Assembly (NCBI GenBank): GCA_964187785.1
Contig: OZ076421.1
Span: 30,070,001-30,134,000, forward strand
Direction of reading: 5' to 3'
Source of the DNA: Amphiscolops sp. MND2022
Taxonomy: Eukaryota
DNA length: 64,000 nt
The notes beneath the pieces are model-generated. The model was not told the origin of the DNA, did no database searches, and was given only the letters and a program-made list of their open reading frames with translations. Shown piece by piece: positions 3,016-64,000 of this stretch; the first letter of the stretch is position 1; the number at the start of each line of letters is the position of its first letter. Made by a program: the position numbers and the translations under genes.

Positions 3016-4138
3016 TTTCGCTCAAGTGAAAATTGTATTTGGCTTTTTAGGAAAGAATTTGAATTGAACCAAAGTGTTTCAGATCCAAAACAAATGTTTA
3101 GAAACAGAAATTATTTGGAGAAAAGTTGTACAATGATCTTGGAAAGGTAGGTTTAGCAACTGATTGTGATGAGGGTTTTTAAAGAGAATGACTTTATCAA
3201 ATATTACAGCTCTATTTTGGAAAATATTGGGACCATGACATCCCTTTTTAGAGGAATCATCCAAGGAATTTTTACCAAAATAGCATTACATCAGCAAACG
3301 TCATTCTATTTATATCACAATTGCACTCGTTGAAACGCGCTCCCGAAGTTCCTAAGGGACCCTAGAAAATTCTATACAGGACCGAAAAGCCGTTATGTAA
3401 AATATATTTTATGGATTGTAAAGTTACAATAATGACACTCCTTTTCTTACTGCGATCGCGTTGTGACGAGTACGCGATACCGTCCAATCCGCTGATTACC
3501 GCATAAGAAAACACACGTATAAAAACGAGTATGCAGAAGACAAACAACTGTCATATACTGCATAGTGAAACAGCAAAATATGTATAGTAATGAGTTTACT
3601 TCTTTTATCAAAACGCGGGATGCCGCGTAGTAAGATGACGAATACACTTCACTTGTAGAGACGCGGGATGCCGCATAGTGTTAATCCGCATAATGCTAAG
3701 TACTCATCATACGATGTACCGCATGTTTCCGCATAACTTAATGCTCAGTTATCGCATAATTGCGATTATAATGTAATCCTTGCACTGTATAATTGCGCGT
3801 AGTGAATGGTAAAAAAATCATCCGATTTCATCAAACTCAGAAGATGTAGTGTAATTATGTAACAAATTAGTCACTGATTTGGATTCTGGGGTGGGAAATT
3901 AGTGTTCATTCATGGTCTGGGTTCACAATGGTGTACAAATCAAATTCATTCCTCAAGTATGTTTCTAAAAAACTTACATGACTTCATCAATTAACAAAAT
4001 GAGCAATTCATCATTGTCACAAATGTTTTCATAAGTTTTCATGGGTAGAGAAGTTTTGTATAGTGGGGTGAAGTTCGCTGTCGTTCTTATTCTCTCATCG
4101 GTGCACTCCGGTTCCAGCGCAGCTGTCGGGCTGCGACA
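2445..4138 (-). repeat. 3' LTR (1694 bp)
   Basis: Nearly identical to 16929-18621; about 9 substitutions and one A-run indel spotted by eye. Confidence 0.96.
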
Positions 4139-5150
4139 GTCCCGCACTTTTGAATAAGAAGAGGGCGGCTTCGAACCCATCTATAAATGCTCTTGATCGT
4201 ACTCCGCGGTCTCTGACTGTCTCCTCACTGTATGCTGTTGCGCCCAGGTAGTTTCCCAGTGTCTCGAGGGCCACTTCATCGTAAGTTTTTCCACACTGGT
4301 CACAGTACCCAGCCACATTGGGCATAACAGTAGGGAACAATCTGCAATTTTGACGAACACTGATTGGAATAAGCAGAACATTCTGACTATGTACCACACT
4401 GAAAGGGAACCCCCATTGCACCCCCGGTATCATAGGGAACACTAATTCTTGGGGTCTACCTGGTCCTCCACGAGGGGGCAACTGTATTATCAATGGGGTC
4501 ATGTTTCCACTAGCGACACCAAGTGGACTTTCATCGTACGTTGGCATTACGTGGATTTCAGCTGGCACTACCTCTTGAACAGTGGGATCCACGTTACTTT
4601 GTACAATCGGCTGTGGGTGGAAAGCAGAGACCCCTGGTCTGTAGTTTGGAGGGTATGTTGGTATCTCTCTGCTCGTTTGTCCCACTTGATGGTCGCTCCT
4701 GAGTGGTGTTGGAAGAATGGCAGCGGATGGGCGGCCATAACTATTCAGCAGTGTAGTTTCGGAGGCAACTGGTTCCAAACCAACTGGAGATCCATTCTCC
4801 CCTTCGTACTCGCTGTCGACGAAGGACGTAATTGACGTAGGAGTAGGTACTCGATTTTCTTCGATCAGTTCCATTAGTTCTTGTTCTATGCCAGTTCCCG
4901 CTGTATCAATTGTTTCGTTCTGAGAGATCGCAATACTGTTGGGTGGGAAAAGCATAGCCGTAGCCGCTCCCATGAACGTTGACATGGCATTATAGTGTGT
5001 CTGATCTACTCGGAATCGTTCTTCAATTTGCGGAATATTACCGGGTTCGACCATAAATTCGTTTTCTGAATTGCTCGAGATGTCTATCACCTCCGGTGAT
5101 ATGGGAGAGTACAGAGAATCTTCGTCTAGGTTGAATTGAAGATTGTTCAT
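4095..5150 (-). CDS. Accessory ORF of the retrotransposon, 351 aa, function unknown
   Basis: Long open frame with an acidic, P/S/T-rich N-terminal part and a C-terminal CxxC (YCDQCG) followed by a helical-looking segment. It crosses the PPT and ends 44 nt inside the 3' LTR. Confidence 0.65.
   Translation of the reverse strand: MNNLQFNLDEDSLYSPISPEVIDISSNSENEFMVEPGNIPQIEERFRVDQTHYNAMSTFMGAATAMLFPPNSIAISQNETIDTAGTGIEQELMELIEENRVPTPTSITSFVDSEYEGENGSPVGLEPVASETTLLNSYGRPSAAILPTPLRSDHQVGQTSREIPTYPPNYRPGVSAFHPQPIVQSNVDPTVQEVVPAEIHVMPTYDESPLGVASGNMTPLIIQLPPRGGPGRPQELVFPMIPGVQWGFPFSVVHSQNVLLIPISVRQNCRLFPTVMPNVAGYCDQCGKTYDEVALETLGNYLGATAYSEETVRDRGVRSRAFIDGFEAALFLFKSAGLSQPDSCAGTGVHR
4139..4151 (-). promoter_or_regulatory. 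Polypurine tract (AAAAGTGCGGGAC) abutting the 3' LTR
   Basis: Purine-rich run directly before the TGT start of the 3' LTR on the minus strand. Confidence 0.7.
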
Positions 5151-5446: not shown

Positions 5447-6916
5447 CGAGACTCGCGGTGTTATGAAGTTTTAAATTATATGTAAACAAAATTTTAACCT
5501 AGCATCAAAAGAAAAGGAATGAAATGAAATCTATCATTAACATCCTAAGTCTAATCAATAATTATCCTTTTTACATGACTGGGAAAAAATATGAAGAAAA
5601 TACAAATTATCAGGAAAACAAAGTTCCAGATTACATCAATTTGAAAGTATCTCTAGCCACACTATTAATCATATTAGCATAGTCCCGCACTTGAAAAGTG
5701 CTATAGGTTCTATTTCATAAACACTCTAATATGAACTAGCACATGACGTGTTAACACTGATGCATGGTGGGGTTTCAAAACGAGATATTTAGGATAGATA
5801 TTGAGACTAGAAACAACAAACAGGTTCGATATGCATCAGTTATATCAAAGGTTTACTGTGTAATGTTGTTTTATTCACTCTTACTCGAGTGTTGTTAGCG
5901 CTTCTTTATCTTTTTAACTGCATGTAGCGAGAATTGTAGGATGCCGAGTATGCGTCACCCACATATCCGCATACTGCCGCATATTGCTCGTTCCGCATGT
6001 TGTCGCATAGTCGTTACTAGTCGTTCCGCATACTGCCGCATAGTCCCTGCTGTGAATCTGTATACTGACGTATACTCATTACCAGTTGTTACGCAGAGTG
6101 CCGCATAGTCTTCATTATAATTCTGTGTACCGATGCATGCTGTCCACTGTAAATCCGCATTTTGACGCACACACTTGTGCTTGTTTTGAAATGAGTCAAT
6201 CAATCTCGCTGGCAGACGAGATTGACGTCTAATCATCCAATCAAATTCGAGTATTCCTTTTGTTAATTTGCGCACAATCGTTTCATTTGCTCTTTTGCCT
6301 TTCTTTGTTATCGCCACGCCTCCAATTTTGTGCTATTTTCATTATAAATTGTTTTTACGTTTACAAGTTTTGAAGAGTTTGAATTACATATCCGTCTTTT
6401 AGTAACAGTCTTTAGCTTTCTTTACATTCCTGCCTCCCAGAATACAGACATTTTCCTGGAAAATCTCCCATCAACACCGTCATTACCCTGTTTTTTGACG
6501 AATTGTTCCATTCCGAGATCTAATGGATCCTGCCAGCAGCAGTTCAAATCCCCCGGGAGAACGGATGACTCGAAAAGATATTTCCCCGCACCACAGAGGA
6601 GCTTTCTCAAGCAGTGCATCACCCTCTGGATCTAATTTGAGTAAGTCCAACTTGTTTCATTTCAATTTTTGATTCAAGATTTCGATTTGGTTAGGTTTAT
6701 GTTTCTTACGTAGCTGGCCAGGCTAGAAAGAAATGAGAACGATCTATTTTCTATTCTAAATCGAACTCGGATTTTTAGAACCCTTCAGTTCTTGACTTCT
6801 AAGCAGTTTCCGTTTTCACTTCCTGTTACCGCGTCCGGTTTCAGAATAACTTTAAACGACTACCGCTCGCAGATCCTATTTAACATTTACGTCTGTTAAT
6901 AGAATCATTGTTTTAG

Positions 6917-57752: not shown

Positions 57753-60709
57753 ATGATCAAGCGTCTTGGGGCAGACGATGTTCTGAACTTGTGTTCGGGA
57801 CAAGTTGTCGTGACTATCTGTGGAATTCTGAAAGAACTGATTGAAAATAGTATTGATGCCTCAGGTGATTTTTAATTTACGTCCACTGTTATCAAGTGAT
57901 CTTTATGTTGATATTGTAAGAACATTGTTTTAGCGTCTGCCATTGATGTTACTGTGAAAGATTGTGGACTGTCGTGCATACAGGTGTTGGACAATGGTAC
58001 TGGTATCTTAGAAAAGAACTTTGAGATGCTTACAGCGAGCCATGCTACGTCGAAGATTTCTCAGTTTGCCGGTGAGTTGATGATTCCTATTGAGATTTGT
58101 GCACCAGTTGAATTTGAAAGCGAGATGACTCGGAAACATGAAAGATGAAATGTTCTTTGATTCTCCTTTTTTGAAAAAAATCGATACATTGGTCAACTGA
58201 TAGTTAACTTTTTATCTAATAGCGTCAATTTAAAGCCGATCTTTTTAGCTTGATGAATCGGTTTTTCCCATTATTCACATGATGTTATCCACAATTATTC
58301 AGTTGGAGTTTTCTTGGTATTACCTGAAACGTTTTCATTGATTAATTGGTTGACAGCCTTTATTCAGAAATTATTTGAAGATGGCTAAAAACCTCACAGG
58401 TAATAATGGAAAATGATCACCATGGCTTTTAGATCAGTTCGAGGTTGAATACTGTTTTATAGGACTATGGTGTTGTGAAATTCTATGGAAATTGTCTTGT
58501 TTCAGACATTGAGTCGATTGAGACTTACGGATTCAGAGGTGAAGCTCTAAGTTCTCTTTGCAACTTGAGTGAACTATCAATGACAACAAGGCACGAAACT
58601 TCTGAATTTGGACATAAGCTGGACTTCAATTCCGACGGCAGCATCTCCAGTCGAGTTAAAATTTCAAGAAATGTTGGCACCACCGTCACTGTCCAAAACG
58701 TCTTCTATAATTACCCTGTTAGGTGCAAAGATTTGAAGAAGAACGTCAAGAAAGAATATGCCAAGCTTGTGTCCACTCTGCAAGCCTTTGCAATATGTTT
58801 CCCAGCCGTGAAGTTCTCTTGTACCAATGAAATTGACCAGAAAGCCAAGCAAATGGTCCTGTCTACCTCAGGGGGTGCACAAACATCGTTAAAGTCGGCC
58901 ATCATTACTGTTTTTGGTTCCAAACAATGGGAATGTCTTATACCATGGCAAACTCACGTGATACCAGATGACCAATTATGTGATTACGCAATTGATGATC
59001 GACTTTCAGCCAATCAGCTCTTCTCAAATGTAGCTTTCAGTGGTTACGTCTCTAGCATAGCCCATGGTAGTGGTCGTAGTACTGGAGATCGACAGTTGCT
59101 GTTTTTGAACAAACGACCTTGTGAGTTACCGAAGTTCACGAAAGCAATAAATGAAGTTTACAAACAGTTCAATTCAACTCAATATCCTTTCATCTGCCTT
59201 TTTGTCACCATCTCGTCCGGGTATTTCGACGTTAACGTAACTCCAGACAAGCGCAATATTTTTCTGAAGAGTGAGAAAATCTTAATAGCGCTTTTACGAC
59301 ACTCTGCTCTTCAAATGTTCAGAATAAATGCTGGCAATTTAACCGACCAAGGAGATGTTGGAATTATGAAAAGTATCAGGAACGACTTCTCTACTCAGCC
59401 TTCGATGAAAGTGAACGAGACAATGTTGAACTTCTTTAGCCCTTCACAAGATACGAGACGTCCGTTTTCACAACCTTTGCCAGCAGCAAAAACGGGATCA
59501 GGTAGTCGAAAAGACGCGATAATGGCAGAACTATCTGTGTTCAGTTTCAACTCCAAGGAAAATAGTAATCCTAATGGCATTTCACAGAAGTCTTTCTCAT
59601 CGCCGGGAAGATCTCCGTCTGTTGTATCTGCTAAGCGCTCTAAACAGTCCATTACAGGTCCATTGCCTTCTCAAACCTTCACAATGTCGTTTGATGATAA
59701 TTTTGCGTCATTTCTGCCACCTTCGAAAACTCCTAGAAATGAACAGTATCTGAATCAGTTGCAAGACTTCTTGGATGAACAGGAATTCGTAGAAGAAATA
59801 ATTGACAGTCAGGAGGATTTCAAACAAACGACGCAATTCGAAGATGCGGAGAATGTTAGTTTTTCCACACCCGGATTCTATGATGAATCCGAAAAGGTTC
59901 CTTTTCATTTGCTGAAGAAAGAAGTATCTGTCAGTGATAATATGTTCGAATTATTCTACGCATCCGAAGTTTCTGGGAGCAGCTTGAATAACAGCGATGT
60001 ATTGGAAGGGCGAAATTTTGTAGCAAAAATGGAAGATAAAAACGCAGAGAACGAGTTGAGAAGAGCATTGAGCAAGTCATCGTTTCAACAAATGACTGTG
60101 ATTGGTCAGTTTAATTTGGGTTTCATAATCGCCAGACTGAATTCAGACTTGTTTATCATTGACCAGCACGCGTCAGACGAAAAGTGTAACTTCGAGAAAC
60201 TGGAGAATGAATACGAAATACCAGTTCAACCATTGATATCTCCCATCACTATGGAGGTTACTCATCAGTATCATCTTCTGCTGCACGAACACAAAGATCT
60301 CTTCCGAAAAAACGGCTTCCTTTTTGAAGATAAAAGAGACCCAGATGGCGTGCCTGGAAATCAAGGTTCTGTAAGATTTGTAAACATCACTGCAACACCG
60401 ATGAGCAGAAATTGGTCCTTTGGGGTGCCAGATGTGGAAGAAATGTTGTTTTTGCTTCAAGATTTTGACACTAGCAATAGAAAAGCAATACGGCCTTCCA
60501 GGGTAAGGCAAATGTTTGCTTCTAGAGCCTGTCGCAAATCAATCATGATTGGCCAAGGCTTGAAGTTGCACGAGATGTTGAACATCTTGAAAAATATGTC
60601 GCAGTTAGAGCAACCCTGGAATTGTCCTCACGGTCGACCAACGCTGAGACATTTGATGGATTTGAATTTGTATAACATTGAACCTACTTGGAATTTTGAC
60701 AACCTGTAG
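57753..60709 (+). CDS. PMS2: Mismatch repair endonuclease PMS2 (MutL family); exons 57753-57864, 57934-58071, 58506-60709; 817 aa
   Basis: CSGQVV...KELIENSIDA, DNGTG, HATSKI, GFRGEALSSL, DQHASDEKCNFE, ACRKS and CPHGRP; two phase-1 GT-AG introns give an uninterrupted frame. Confidence 0.96.
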
Positions 60710-60996: not shown

Positions 60997-61434
60997 AGTC
61001 GGTGCTTTTCTTGAAAAGAGCCGACTACAGGCATGGCTTTTCGTCAGTGTTTTAATTTTTTTCGATACACCAGAAGTGACCAAAATAGTTCTACTAAAAG
61101 TTCTACAAAATTTTAAATTTCACCTGTTGGCCCAGGGAACTGAACCTAAAAGGTTTTTACTTTTTTCCGCGTACCATACATTACCGGCGAGACTGAAGGG
61201 TCCTCTTTTCAGTTTTTTCGGCATTGTGCGACTTTTCGGAAAAATTTTTTCCACCAAAGGGTCCCCCTTCATTTTTTTGTAGTTTTGCGAGAGAATGGAT
61301 GTTGGAAAATCCCGAAGGGTCCCCCTTTCAGTTTTCTAGGCATTGTGAGACTTTTTTCCAAAAAAATTCAGGTGCTGTAGAAGAGAATACTTTGACATTT
61401 GGAAGTCCTTTTGCTATTTTTGAGCCTCAGGTAT
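60997..61434. repeat. Dispersed ~500-bp element, copy 2
   Basis: Colinear with 1713-2200; 5' hairpin AGTCGG...TTTTC-TT-GAAAA...CCGACT. Confidence 0.75.
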
Positions 61435-61499
61435 GTGTTCGTTGTTGTTGCTCATTTTGTTGAATTTAATTGTAGTTTCTCATCTAATCATGAATGTGT

Positions 61500-64000
61500 T
61501 CATAAGCAACTTGAGGAATGATATCTGATTATTTGTGTACTCTGACATCATTGTTGCTTGCTTTGGTCAATTCTAGTTGATCAAACTTCTTTCGTTCATT
61601 TTCCAAAGCAGTGGTTTTTTTGTCAGTTGTTCCGTTCTTTTATTGTTCAGGTCCTTGTGATCGTGATGAAAAGCAACGGGCGGAATGACATCTGATTATT
61701 TGTGTACTCTGACATTTATTGTTTGTTGCCTGTTTGGATGACTTCTAGTTGATTAAACTTCTTTCGTTCATTTTCCAAAGCAGTGATTTGTCAGTTGTTC
61801 CGTTCTTTTATTGTTCAGGTCCTTGTGATCGTGATGAAAAGCAACGGGCGGAATGACATCTTATTATTTGTGTACTCTGACATTAGTGTTTGTTGCTTGC
61901 GTTGATGATTTCTAATTTATCAAACTTCTTTCGTTCATTTTCCTAAGCAGTGATTTTTTGTCAGTTGTTCCGTTCTTTTATTGTTCAGGTCCTTATAATG
62001 ATCGTGATGAAAAGCAACGGGCGGAATGACATCTGATTATTTGTGTACTCTGACATCATTGTTGCTTGCTTTGGTCAATTCTAGTTGATCAAACTTCCTT
62101 CGTTCATTTTCCAAAGCAGTGTTTTTTTGTCAGTTGTTCCGTTGTTTCATTGTTCAGGTCCTTGTGATCGTGATGAAAAGCAACGGGCGGAATGACATCT
62201 GATTATTTGTGTACTCTGACATTGTTGTTTGTTGCTTGCGTTGATGAATTCTAATTTATCAAACTTCTTTCTTTCATTTTCCAAAGCAGTGATTTTTTGT
62301 CAGTTGTTCCGTTCTTTTATTGTTCAGGTCCTTGTAATGATCGCGATGAAAAGCAACGGGCGGAATGACATCTGATTATGTGTACTCTGACAATATTGTT
62401 TGTTGCGTGCTTTGATCAATTCTGGTTGATCAAGTACGTTTGCTTAATTGCCCAAAACAATGTTTTTTTTGTCAGTTGTTCCGTTCTTTTATTGTTCAGG
62501 TCCTTATAATGATCGTGATGAAAAGCAACGGGCGGAATGACATCTGATTATTTGTGTACTCTGACATCATTGTTGCTTGCTTTGGTCAATTCTAGTTGAT
62601 CAAACTTCTTTCGTTCATTTTCCAAAGCAGTAGTTTTTTGTCAGTTGTTCCGTTGTTTTATTGTTCAGGTCCTTGTGATCGTGATGAAAAGCAACGGGCG
62701 GAATGACATCTGATTATTTGTGTACTCTGACATTGTTGTTTGTTGCTTGCGTTGATGAATTCTAGTTTATCAAACTTCTTTCTTTCATTTTCCAAAGCAG
62801 TGATTTTTTGTCAGTTGTTCCGTTCTCTTATTGTTCAGGTCCTTGTTATGATCGCGATGAAAAACAACGGGCGGAATGACATCTGATTATTTGTGTACTC
62901 TGACATTATTGTTTGTTGCGTGCTTTGATCAATTCTGGTTGATCAAGTACGTTTGCTCAATTGCCCAAAACTATGTTTTTTTGTCGGTTGTTCAGTTGTT
63001 TTATTGTTCAGGTCCTTGTAGTGATCGTGATGAAAAGCAACGGGCGGAATGACATCTGATTATATGTGTACTCTGACATTATTGTTTGTTGCGTGCTTTG
63101 ATCAACTCAAGTCGATCAAGTACGTTTCCTTCATTGCCCAAATCATTGATTCTTTTTGCCGGTTGTTCCGTTGTTTTATTGTTCAGGTCCTTGTAGTGAT
63201 CGTGATGAAAAGCAACGGGCGGAATGACATCTGATTATTTGTGTACTCTGACATTATTGTTTGTTGCGTGCTTTGATAATTCAAGTTGATCCAGTACGTT
63301 TGCTTCATTGCCCAAACAATGATTTTCTGTCCGTTGTTCCGTTCTTTCATTATTCAGGTCCTTGTAGTGATCGTGATGAAAAGCAACGGGCGGAATGACT
63401 TCTGATTATTAGTGTACTATGACATTATTTTTTGCTGCCTGCTGTGATCAATTCTAGTTGATCAAACTTCTGTCGTTCATTTCCCATAGCTGTGATTTTT
63501 GTCGGTTGTTCCGTTGTTTTATTGTTCAGGTCCTTGTAGTGATTGCGATGAAAAGCAACGGGCGGAATGACATCTGATTATTTGTGTACTCTGACATTAT
63601 TGTTTGTTGCGAGCTTTGATCAATTGAAGTTAATCAAGTACGTTTGCTTCATTGCCCAAAACGATTTTTTGTCGGTTGTTCCGTTGGTTTTTTTGTTGAG
63701 GTCCTTGTAGTGATCGTTCTGAAAAGCAACGGGCGGAATGACATCTGATTATTTGTGTACTCTGACATTGTTTGTTGCCTGCTTTGATGAATTCTAGTTG
63801 ATCAAACTTCTTTCGTTCATTTTCCAAAGCAGTGATTTTTTGTCAGTTGTTCCGTTCTTTTATTGTTCAGGTCCTTGTAATGATTGTGATGAAAAGCAAC
63901 GGGCGGAATGATATCTGATTATTTTTGTACTTTGACATTGTTTTTTGTTGCCTGCTGTGATCAATTCTAGTTGATCAAAATTCTTTCGTTCATTTCCCAT
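61500..64000 (+). repeat. Tandem array with a 166-175 bp unit, about 15 copies, running to the window end
   Basis: The anchor motif GAAAA(G/A)CAACGGGCGG recurs at 61668, 61836, 62009, 62175, 62348, 62520, 62686, 62859, 63032, 63207, 63378, 63550, 63721 and 63891; a degenerate first unit lies near 61505. Confidence 0.98.
61663..61712 (+). ncRNA. Box C/D snoRNA-like module (U43/snR70-like), representative of the 14 array copies
   Basis: Box C GTGATGA 61663-61669; guide ACGGGCGG; D' ATGA 61685-61688; C'-like CTGATTA; box D CTGA 61709-61712. The guide is complementary to 18S CCGCCCGU. Confidence 0.7.

Follow-up and report, generated by a model that had tools for sequence, protein, structure and literature searches.

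A tandem array of candidate U43/snR70-type box C/D snoRNA units and a solitary related copy on one chromosome of Amphiscolops sp. MND2022

The methyl group on the decoding-centre C of the small-subunit rRNA is among the few rRNA modifications that have been traced to the last eukaryotic common ancestor, and its guide is normally encoded by a single intronic gene. In trypanosomatids, Euglena and plants, small modification-guide snoRNAs also occur as tandem repeats that are released from polycistronic precursors, but there the clusters usually combine several different snoRNAs, repeated only a few times. U43/snR70 is assigned to the C that corresponds to E. coli C1402, the SNORD43/snR70 clan has itself been placed in the last eukaryotic common ancestor, and the archaeal sRNA sR12, predicted to guide modification of the equivalent site, has been proposed as the counterpart of snR70 (PMC3511168). 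In snR70, as reported by Van Nues et al., the D' box is conserved but divergent, the guide is among the shortest, and an extra pairing just upstream of the target raises methylation, while extra pairing in the second guide position is an arrangement known for other snoRNAs (PMC3116282). Arrays of the SNORD115/116 type are described as evolving by birth-and-death and conversion and as containing some degenerate units (PMC3413130, PMC8789076, PMC12429941). In zebrafish, the tandem U3 and U8 genes are of maternal type and the solitary ones of somatic type (bioRxiv 10.1101/858936). In the titles and abstracts of the literature searched, no animal was reported to carry a canonical rRNA-modification guide as a large tandem array, the nearest item being weak snoRNA predictions in the W-satellites of Schistosoma (PMC8490949).

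The window analysed here (the whole stretch of 64,000 nt from contig OZ076421.1) ends in a tandem array, for which Tandem Repeats Finder gives a period of 173 bp, 14.6 copies and 86% matches (61504-63999). This period and the unit sequence confirm the description in an earlier note of a repeat that carries C, D', C' and D boxes within 50 nt. A second period of 339 bp corresponds to a dimer and is explained by the occurrence of the array spacers as two subtypes. The part of the array inside the window (61504..64000, + strand) comprises 14 units and one degenerate first unit (61515..61548, + strand), which lacks box C, has AAGCAACTTGAGGAATGA as its guide and is immediately preceded by a dispersed repeat of very high copy number, truncated in this copy. 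The array, whose length beyond the window had been named as a point to determine, was followed for a further 12.6 kb beyond the end of the window. The adjoining 10 kb (L002 1-10000) consists wholly of the array repeat (58 copies), and the array ends about 2.5 kb into the following segment (L003 1-~2480), with the repeat absent from the 90 kb beyond its end in L003. In a BLAST search of the joined sequence with the 52-nt core, the whole array was found to contain 88 units, each 166-175 bp long and all on the + strand, over about 15 kb. The core matches span window position 61515 to an extended coordinate of about 76480, equivalent to G000:C13:30131515-30146480. The array sequence is also present in contigs of four public runs from two samples, and is therefore not an artefact of this assembly. 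Searches for public runs returned only these four, all from one study. They are genomic-DNA-like, their depth being uniform across the coding region and flank, and neither splice-like joints nor transcripts or RNA ends were seen in them.

On its left side, the array is preceded by a 744-aa open frame for a PMS2-type MutL homologue (58475-60709, + strand), recognizable by GFRGEAL and C-terminal endonuclease motifs, which ends about 750 bp ahead of the array. On its right side, a gene for a DHHC-type palmitoyltransferase starts about 950 bp past the array, with exons on the + strand at L003 3434-3627 (ending in GTAAGT), 4184-4570 and 6433-6640 (whose frame contains the DHHC motif). From its position between the PMS2-like stop and DHHC exon 1, the array is intergenic or lies in an untranslated leader, and no promoter or host exon was identified in the array region. 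A dispersed repeat copy (window 61018-61435), truncated where the array begins, is located between the PMS2-like gene and the array. The depth of this dispersed repeat in the DNA runs is thousands of times the single-copy depth, and similar copies occur past the array (L003 about 3040-3130) and near the solitary locus described below.

The unit contains a compact module of 50 nt from box C to box D, which in a representative intact unit (62170-62219, + strand) reads, in order, GTGATGA, AAAGCAACGGGCGGA, ATGA, CATC, TGATTA, TTTGTGTACT and CTGA. Box C (GTGATGA, 62170..62176) is followed by the D' guide AAAGCAACGGGCGGA (62177..62191), the non-consensus D' box ATGA (62192..62195), the equally non-consensus C' box TGATTA (62200..62205), the second guide position TTTGTGTACT (62206..62215) and box D (CTGA, 62216..62219). 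The two guide spacers thus measure 15 and 10 nt, and C' stands 4 nt past D' in a K-loop-like arrangement. Boxes C and D of a box C/D RNA are present in the consensus, with a gap of 39 nt from GTGATGA to CTGA, and the internal D' and C' boxes stand at guide-compatible spacing, all four boxes being placed by an alignment of sR18 type. K-turn geometry suggests that the U at the fifth position of C' could pair with the first A of D', replacing the usual G-C pair. The remainder of the unit is a T-rich spacer of about 112-120 nt (62220..62341 in this unit), for which no match was found elsewhere in the genome. Folding gave no significant structure (z-scores 0.6 and 0.8) and no clear terminal stem, the terminal pairing seen by eye being a weak, G.U-rich helix of 7 bp with a one-base bulge. 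The lack of a predicted stable fold is common among C/D snoRNAs and lends the array no support.

Within the window, ACGGGCGGAATGA occurs exactly 14 times on the + strand and not at all on the - strand, in agreement with the earlier observation that it is invariant in all 14 units. The combination of box C, AGCAACGGGCGGAATGA and box D is exact in eight of these 14 units, and the figure is seven when C' is also required to be intact, in agreement with the seven copies originally counted.

The small-subunit decoding site had been proposed as the target of the guide, and the host 18S is consistent with this assignment. The rDNA-type 18S copies read TTGTACACACCGCCCGTCGCTAC / TTGTACACACCGCCCGTCGCT, and a duplex scan of one SSU copy returned the decoding-site CCGCCCGU, with which ACGGGCGG of the guide pairs, as the best partner (-22.1 kcal/mol, vs -15.4 kcal/mol for the runner-up). 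The main guide duplex consists of 8 bp, followed by an A.C mismatch (A62182 vs C1407) and 3 further pairs. By the D'+5 rule, the guide base five positions ahead of D' (G62187) is paired with the counterpart of E. coli C1402, as had been claimed, and this predicted target corresponds to human Cm1703/1705 and yeast Cm1639. The complementarity of TGTGTAC in the second guide position to the adjacent rRNA also held: in silico, UGUGUAC forms a duplex with the GUACACA that adjoins the main target stretch on its 5' side, so that the bipartite pairing covers 18 contiguous rRNA bases, and a scan with the whole core placed both guide segments on contiguous rRNA at -28.3 kcal/mol.

One prediction of the earlier note failed. 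The host 18S had been expected to read CCGCCCGUUGCU (UUGCU), which would have lengthened the perfect duplex; the rDNA-type copies instead read CCGCCCGUCGCU / CCGCCCGTCGCT (GTCGCT), and the A.C mismatch stays. This mismatch is common to the array and the solitary copy, and is therefore ancestral rather than a product of decay within the array. An isolated 157-nt fragment of the 18S 3'-end on another chromosome (L013, G000:C3:48527685 region), the only copy with GTTGC, reads CCGCCCGTTGCAAC and would pair perfectly with the guide over 11 bp. It was rejected as support for CCGCCCGUUGCU, the copy being a fragment, most likely a decayed piece with a CpG transition and no working rRNA variant. Other 18S copies look irregular in different ways. 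In the copy on C1691 (L017 / L018), it takes 1672 bases to cover the final 468 positions of the model, a sign of a large insertion, and this copy is followed by an LSU piece on the other strand; in the copy on C6 (L015), the whole SSU model is contained within only 1434 bases.

The presence of two blocks antisense to contiguous 18S might also be attributed to an antisense rDNA fragment that turned into a satellite, or to chance likeness, in either case without snoRNA ancestry. Such an origin is very improbable, for the complementarity stops exactly at the guide blocks, the 17 nt between them contain D' and C', boxes C and D flank the blocks at the proper spacing, and the same module recurs at a second locus in an unrelated 5' context.

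The covariance-model match to SNORD43 or snR70 that had been suggested as a check was not obtained, either at the gathering score across the whole window or at E<=10 with the array and a single unit, and the array stays below the gathering threshold of RF00221 (45 bits). A lone unit gave a sole full-length + strand alignment in Rfam, to the archaeal sR18 (10.7 bits, not significant), and this weak match reflects layout, not ancestry. The Rfam SNORD43 consensus, as seen in its alignment to an unrelated weak match, reads AUGAUGAACUUAUUGACGGGCGgA, and the ACGGGCGGA of the array guide is the string that follows box C in this consensus, at the same place. The four best matches of the SNORD43 model in the genome (23-25 bits) lie outside the array and were rejected as U43 genes, having only AACUUAUUGACGG in common and lacking GGGCGG.

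The 20-mer ACGGGCGGAATGACATCTGA, which runs over the guide, D' and C', was found genome-wide with up to 2 mismatches at 86 sites in the array, one solitary site and one unrelated site, while a reversed control of the pattern gave 0 sites. The confinement of the motif to these places, with a control of 0, shows that the array is not a product of chance. The unrelated site, a 2-mismatch match on C5, was discarded for want of a box C. Nine further sites of the form TGATGA-N3-14-ACGGGCGG were likewise discarded, being at chance level (reversed control 35) and without the remaining motifs. Since the other pattern matches and the SNORD43-model matches lack the motifs or the guide, no U43-type candidate was found beyond the array and the solitary locus. 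Pattern scans for relatives in metagenomes gave either none or five chance matches without box C or box D.

The solitary copy lies on the - strand of the same chromosome, 14.8 Mb from the array (module G000:C13:15350609-15350659, L001 about 1499-1555; 20-mer match G000:C13:15350628-47). It is identical to the array core at 49 of 52 bases, the three differences being U for A after box C, UGAAUA for UGAUUA, and the last base. Its 5' flank is unrelated to the array, and its flanks have no significant homology to the internal array spacer. Its 3' side, however, matches the sequence past the last array unit (84 nt at 90.5% identity, including the core and about 30 nt of flank). The matching of the solitary 3' flank to the post-array flank, and not to internal spacers, points to a duplication that links the two loci, and to an amplified unit that ends right after box D. 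Open frames resembling ankyrin repeats are located a few kb from the solitary copy on the same strand, and this copy may therefore be intronic. A tRNA-like (SINE-like) sequence is also present about 800 bp away (L001 about 601-740).

Constraint was measured across 87 aligned array units, whose mean identity is 86.7%. The spacers diverge more than the core, as had been claimed, with a mean diversity of 0.159 outside the core and 0.051 within it. The first guide has the lowest diversity of all elements (0.024), and the least-changed 50-column windows overlap the core. By parsimony, in event counts that are approximate, since a single event is carried to further units by recombination, the core has 0.98 substitutions per site vs 1.73 outside it (binomial p 1e-4); the contrast weakens to 1.24 vs 1.71 when the tree is built from spacer columns only. 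The difference extends to G/C columns (1.05 vs 2.36 substitutions per site) and to CpG columns, which show about 0.5 changes per column in the guide (4 columns) vs about 3.4 in the spacer (8 columns). An identical 50-nt core is present in 25 units, although whole units differ by 13% on average. The motifs are nonetheless unevenly kept across the array: TGTGTACTCTGA is retained in 68 of the 87 units, box C is intact in 65 and altered in 22 (e.g. GCGATGA, or GTTCTGA, which loses the first GA), and every motif is intact in only 30. Equal divergence of boxes and spacers had been named as an outcome that would speak against the snoRNA interpretation, and here the core as a whole changes less than the spacer, while box C changes as often as the spacer. 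Overall, the data are consistent with a multi-copy family under partial purifying selection.

An alternative is that the solitary gene alone works, and that the array, a duplicate of it which expanded in the manner of ordinary satellite DNA, is a snoRNA-derived satellite whose units are silent or yield no stable snoRNA. Hallmarks of satellite DNA are present, i.e. 88 head-to-tail units, a dimer period, and identical units at lags of 9 and 14, the last indicating recent block duplications. Such 9- and 14-unit higher-order duplications and a mean identity of 87% are typical of satellite dynamics, and the damage to box C in a quarter of the units, the full intactness of only a third, the intergenic position beside a truncated high-copy repeat, and the lack of an Rfam model match all suit this alternative. 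Neutral decay, by contrast, does not predict a core that takes about half of the substitutions of the spacer with its CpGs spared, nor the single 50-nt core shared by 25 otherwise divergent units. A silent, snoRNA-derived satellite is rated a substantial possibility, less probable than an array of working copies.

As judged from sequence, the unit very probably is, or descends from, a gene for a U43/snR70-type box C/D snoRNA, and the array copies are, with less assurance, likely to be working genes. The best explanation for the locus, to which a probability of roughly 0.58 is assigned, is a tandemly amplified minimal guide gene of the SNORD43/U43/snR70 type, part of whose copies are probably productive. 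This explanation draws on the anatomy of the array, its target complementarity, its uniqueness in the genome, its homology to the solitary copy and the slower change of its core. The array RNA, about 55-60 nt long, would assemble with fibrillarin, Nop56, Nop58 and Snu13; pairing of ACGGGCGG with 18S CCGCCCGU would allow the D'+5 rule to place a 2'-O-methyl group on the decoding-centre C, and the UGUGUAC:GUACACA pairing would stabilise the short 8-bp guide duplex. On this view the array started from a duplicated solitary gene and expanded where it now stands, through unequal crossing-over or segmental duplication, the reverse origin, in which the solitary gene derived from the array, being the alternative. 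A fraction of the copies, roughly the third in which every motif is intact, would probably still be productive. No convincing exon or pair of splice sites was found within the 173-bp unit with its spacer of about 112 nt. Because the units are too short for each to hold an exon and an intron, the snoRNAs would most likely be cut from a long + strand transcript.

The array RNAs might instead serve a purpose other than methylation, either as a chaperone or timer that keeps hold of the 18S decoding-site strand while the small subunit is assembled, or as a stage-specific (e.g. oocyte) supply beside a somatic solitary gene. The pairing over 18 contiguous rRNA bases near the central pseudoknot and decoding region, the stronger conservation of the guide than of box C, and the zebrafish precedent of tandem maternal and solitary somatic U3/U8 genes (bioRxiv 10.1101/858936) are consistent with roles of this kind. 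The architecture, however, is that of a standard methylation guide in the correct D'+5 register, and a purpose other than methylation is rated improbable.

An 88-copy run of a housekeeping rRNA guide is unusual. It raises the tentative possibility that core rRNA guides may be supplied in this animal from large tandem arrays, as a dosage or stage-specific (e.g. germline vs somatic) system, not known to be described in animals, in which archaeal-sized snoRNAs of about 55 nt are released from a long repeat transcript. With three diagnostic bases to tell the solitary copy from the array, the two together provide a natural test of whether dosage or stage variants of a snoRNA tune ribosome modification, and the array offers a way to study how very small, archaeal-like snoRNAs are freed from a transcript of repeats. 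Should the copies be silent, the locus would instead clearly exemplify the origin of a satellite in a snoRNA gene.

Among the known systems, the candidate guide gene is most readily compared with SNORD43 (U43, RF00221) and yeast snR70 (RF01238), both of clan CL00059. It resembles them in the ACGGGCGGA guide after box C, the predicted decoding-centre C target in 18S, the short guide, the non-consensus D' and the extra pairing upstream of the target. It differs from SNORD43 in its length, its module being much shorter (50 nt including boxes C and D, for a model of 64 positions), and in falling below every Rfam threshold. Unlike in SNORD43/snR70, the extra pairing is in the D-guide position and not in a D'-C' loop, guide position 10 forms an A.C mismatch, and 88 copies stand in tandem in addition to the solitary one. 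The compact, symmetric C-D'-C'-D order with a D'-C' linker of a few nt is shared with archaeal C/D sRNAs (sR18, sR12); the host is eukaryotic, however, and the array spacers measure 15 and 10 nt, compared with about 12 nt in the archaeal RNAs.

In its copy number, the array resembles mammalian SNORD115/SNORD116 (and SNORD113/114), in which one box C/D snoRNA is likewise repeated head to tail tens of times. SNORD115/116 are, by contrast, orphan snoRNAs without an rRNA target, while the guide here is a canonical, ancient rRNA guide, and their units are kb-long, compared with 173 bp here, each intron of the non-coding host transcript holding a single snoRNA. The zebrafish U3 and U8 genes, unlike the units of this array, encode processing snoRNAs and have their own promoters and much larger units, and share with the present locus the coexistence of tandem and solitary genes for one snoRNA (bioRxiv 10.1101/858936).
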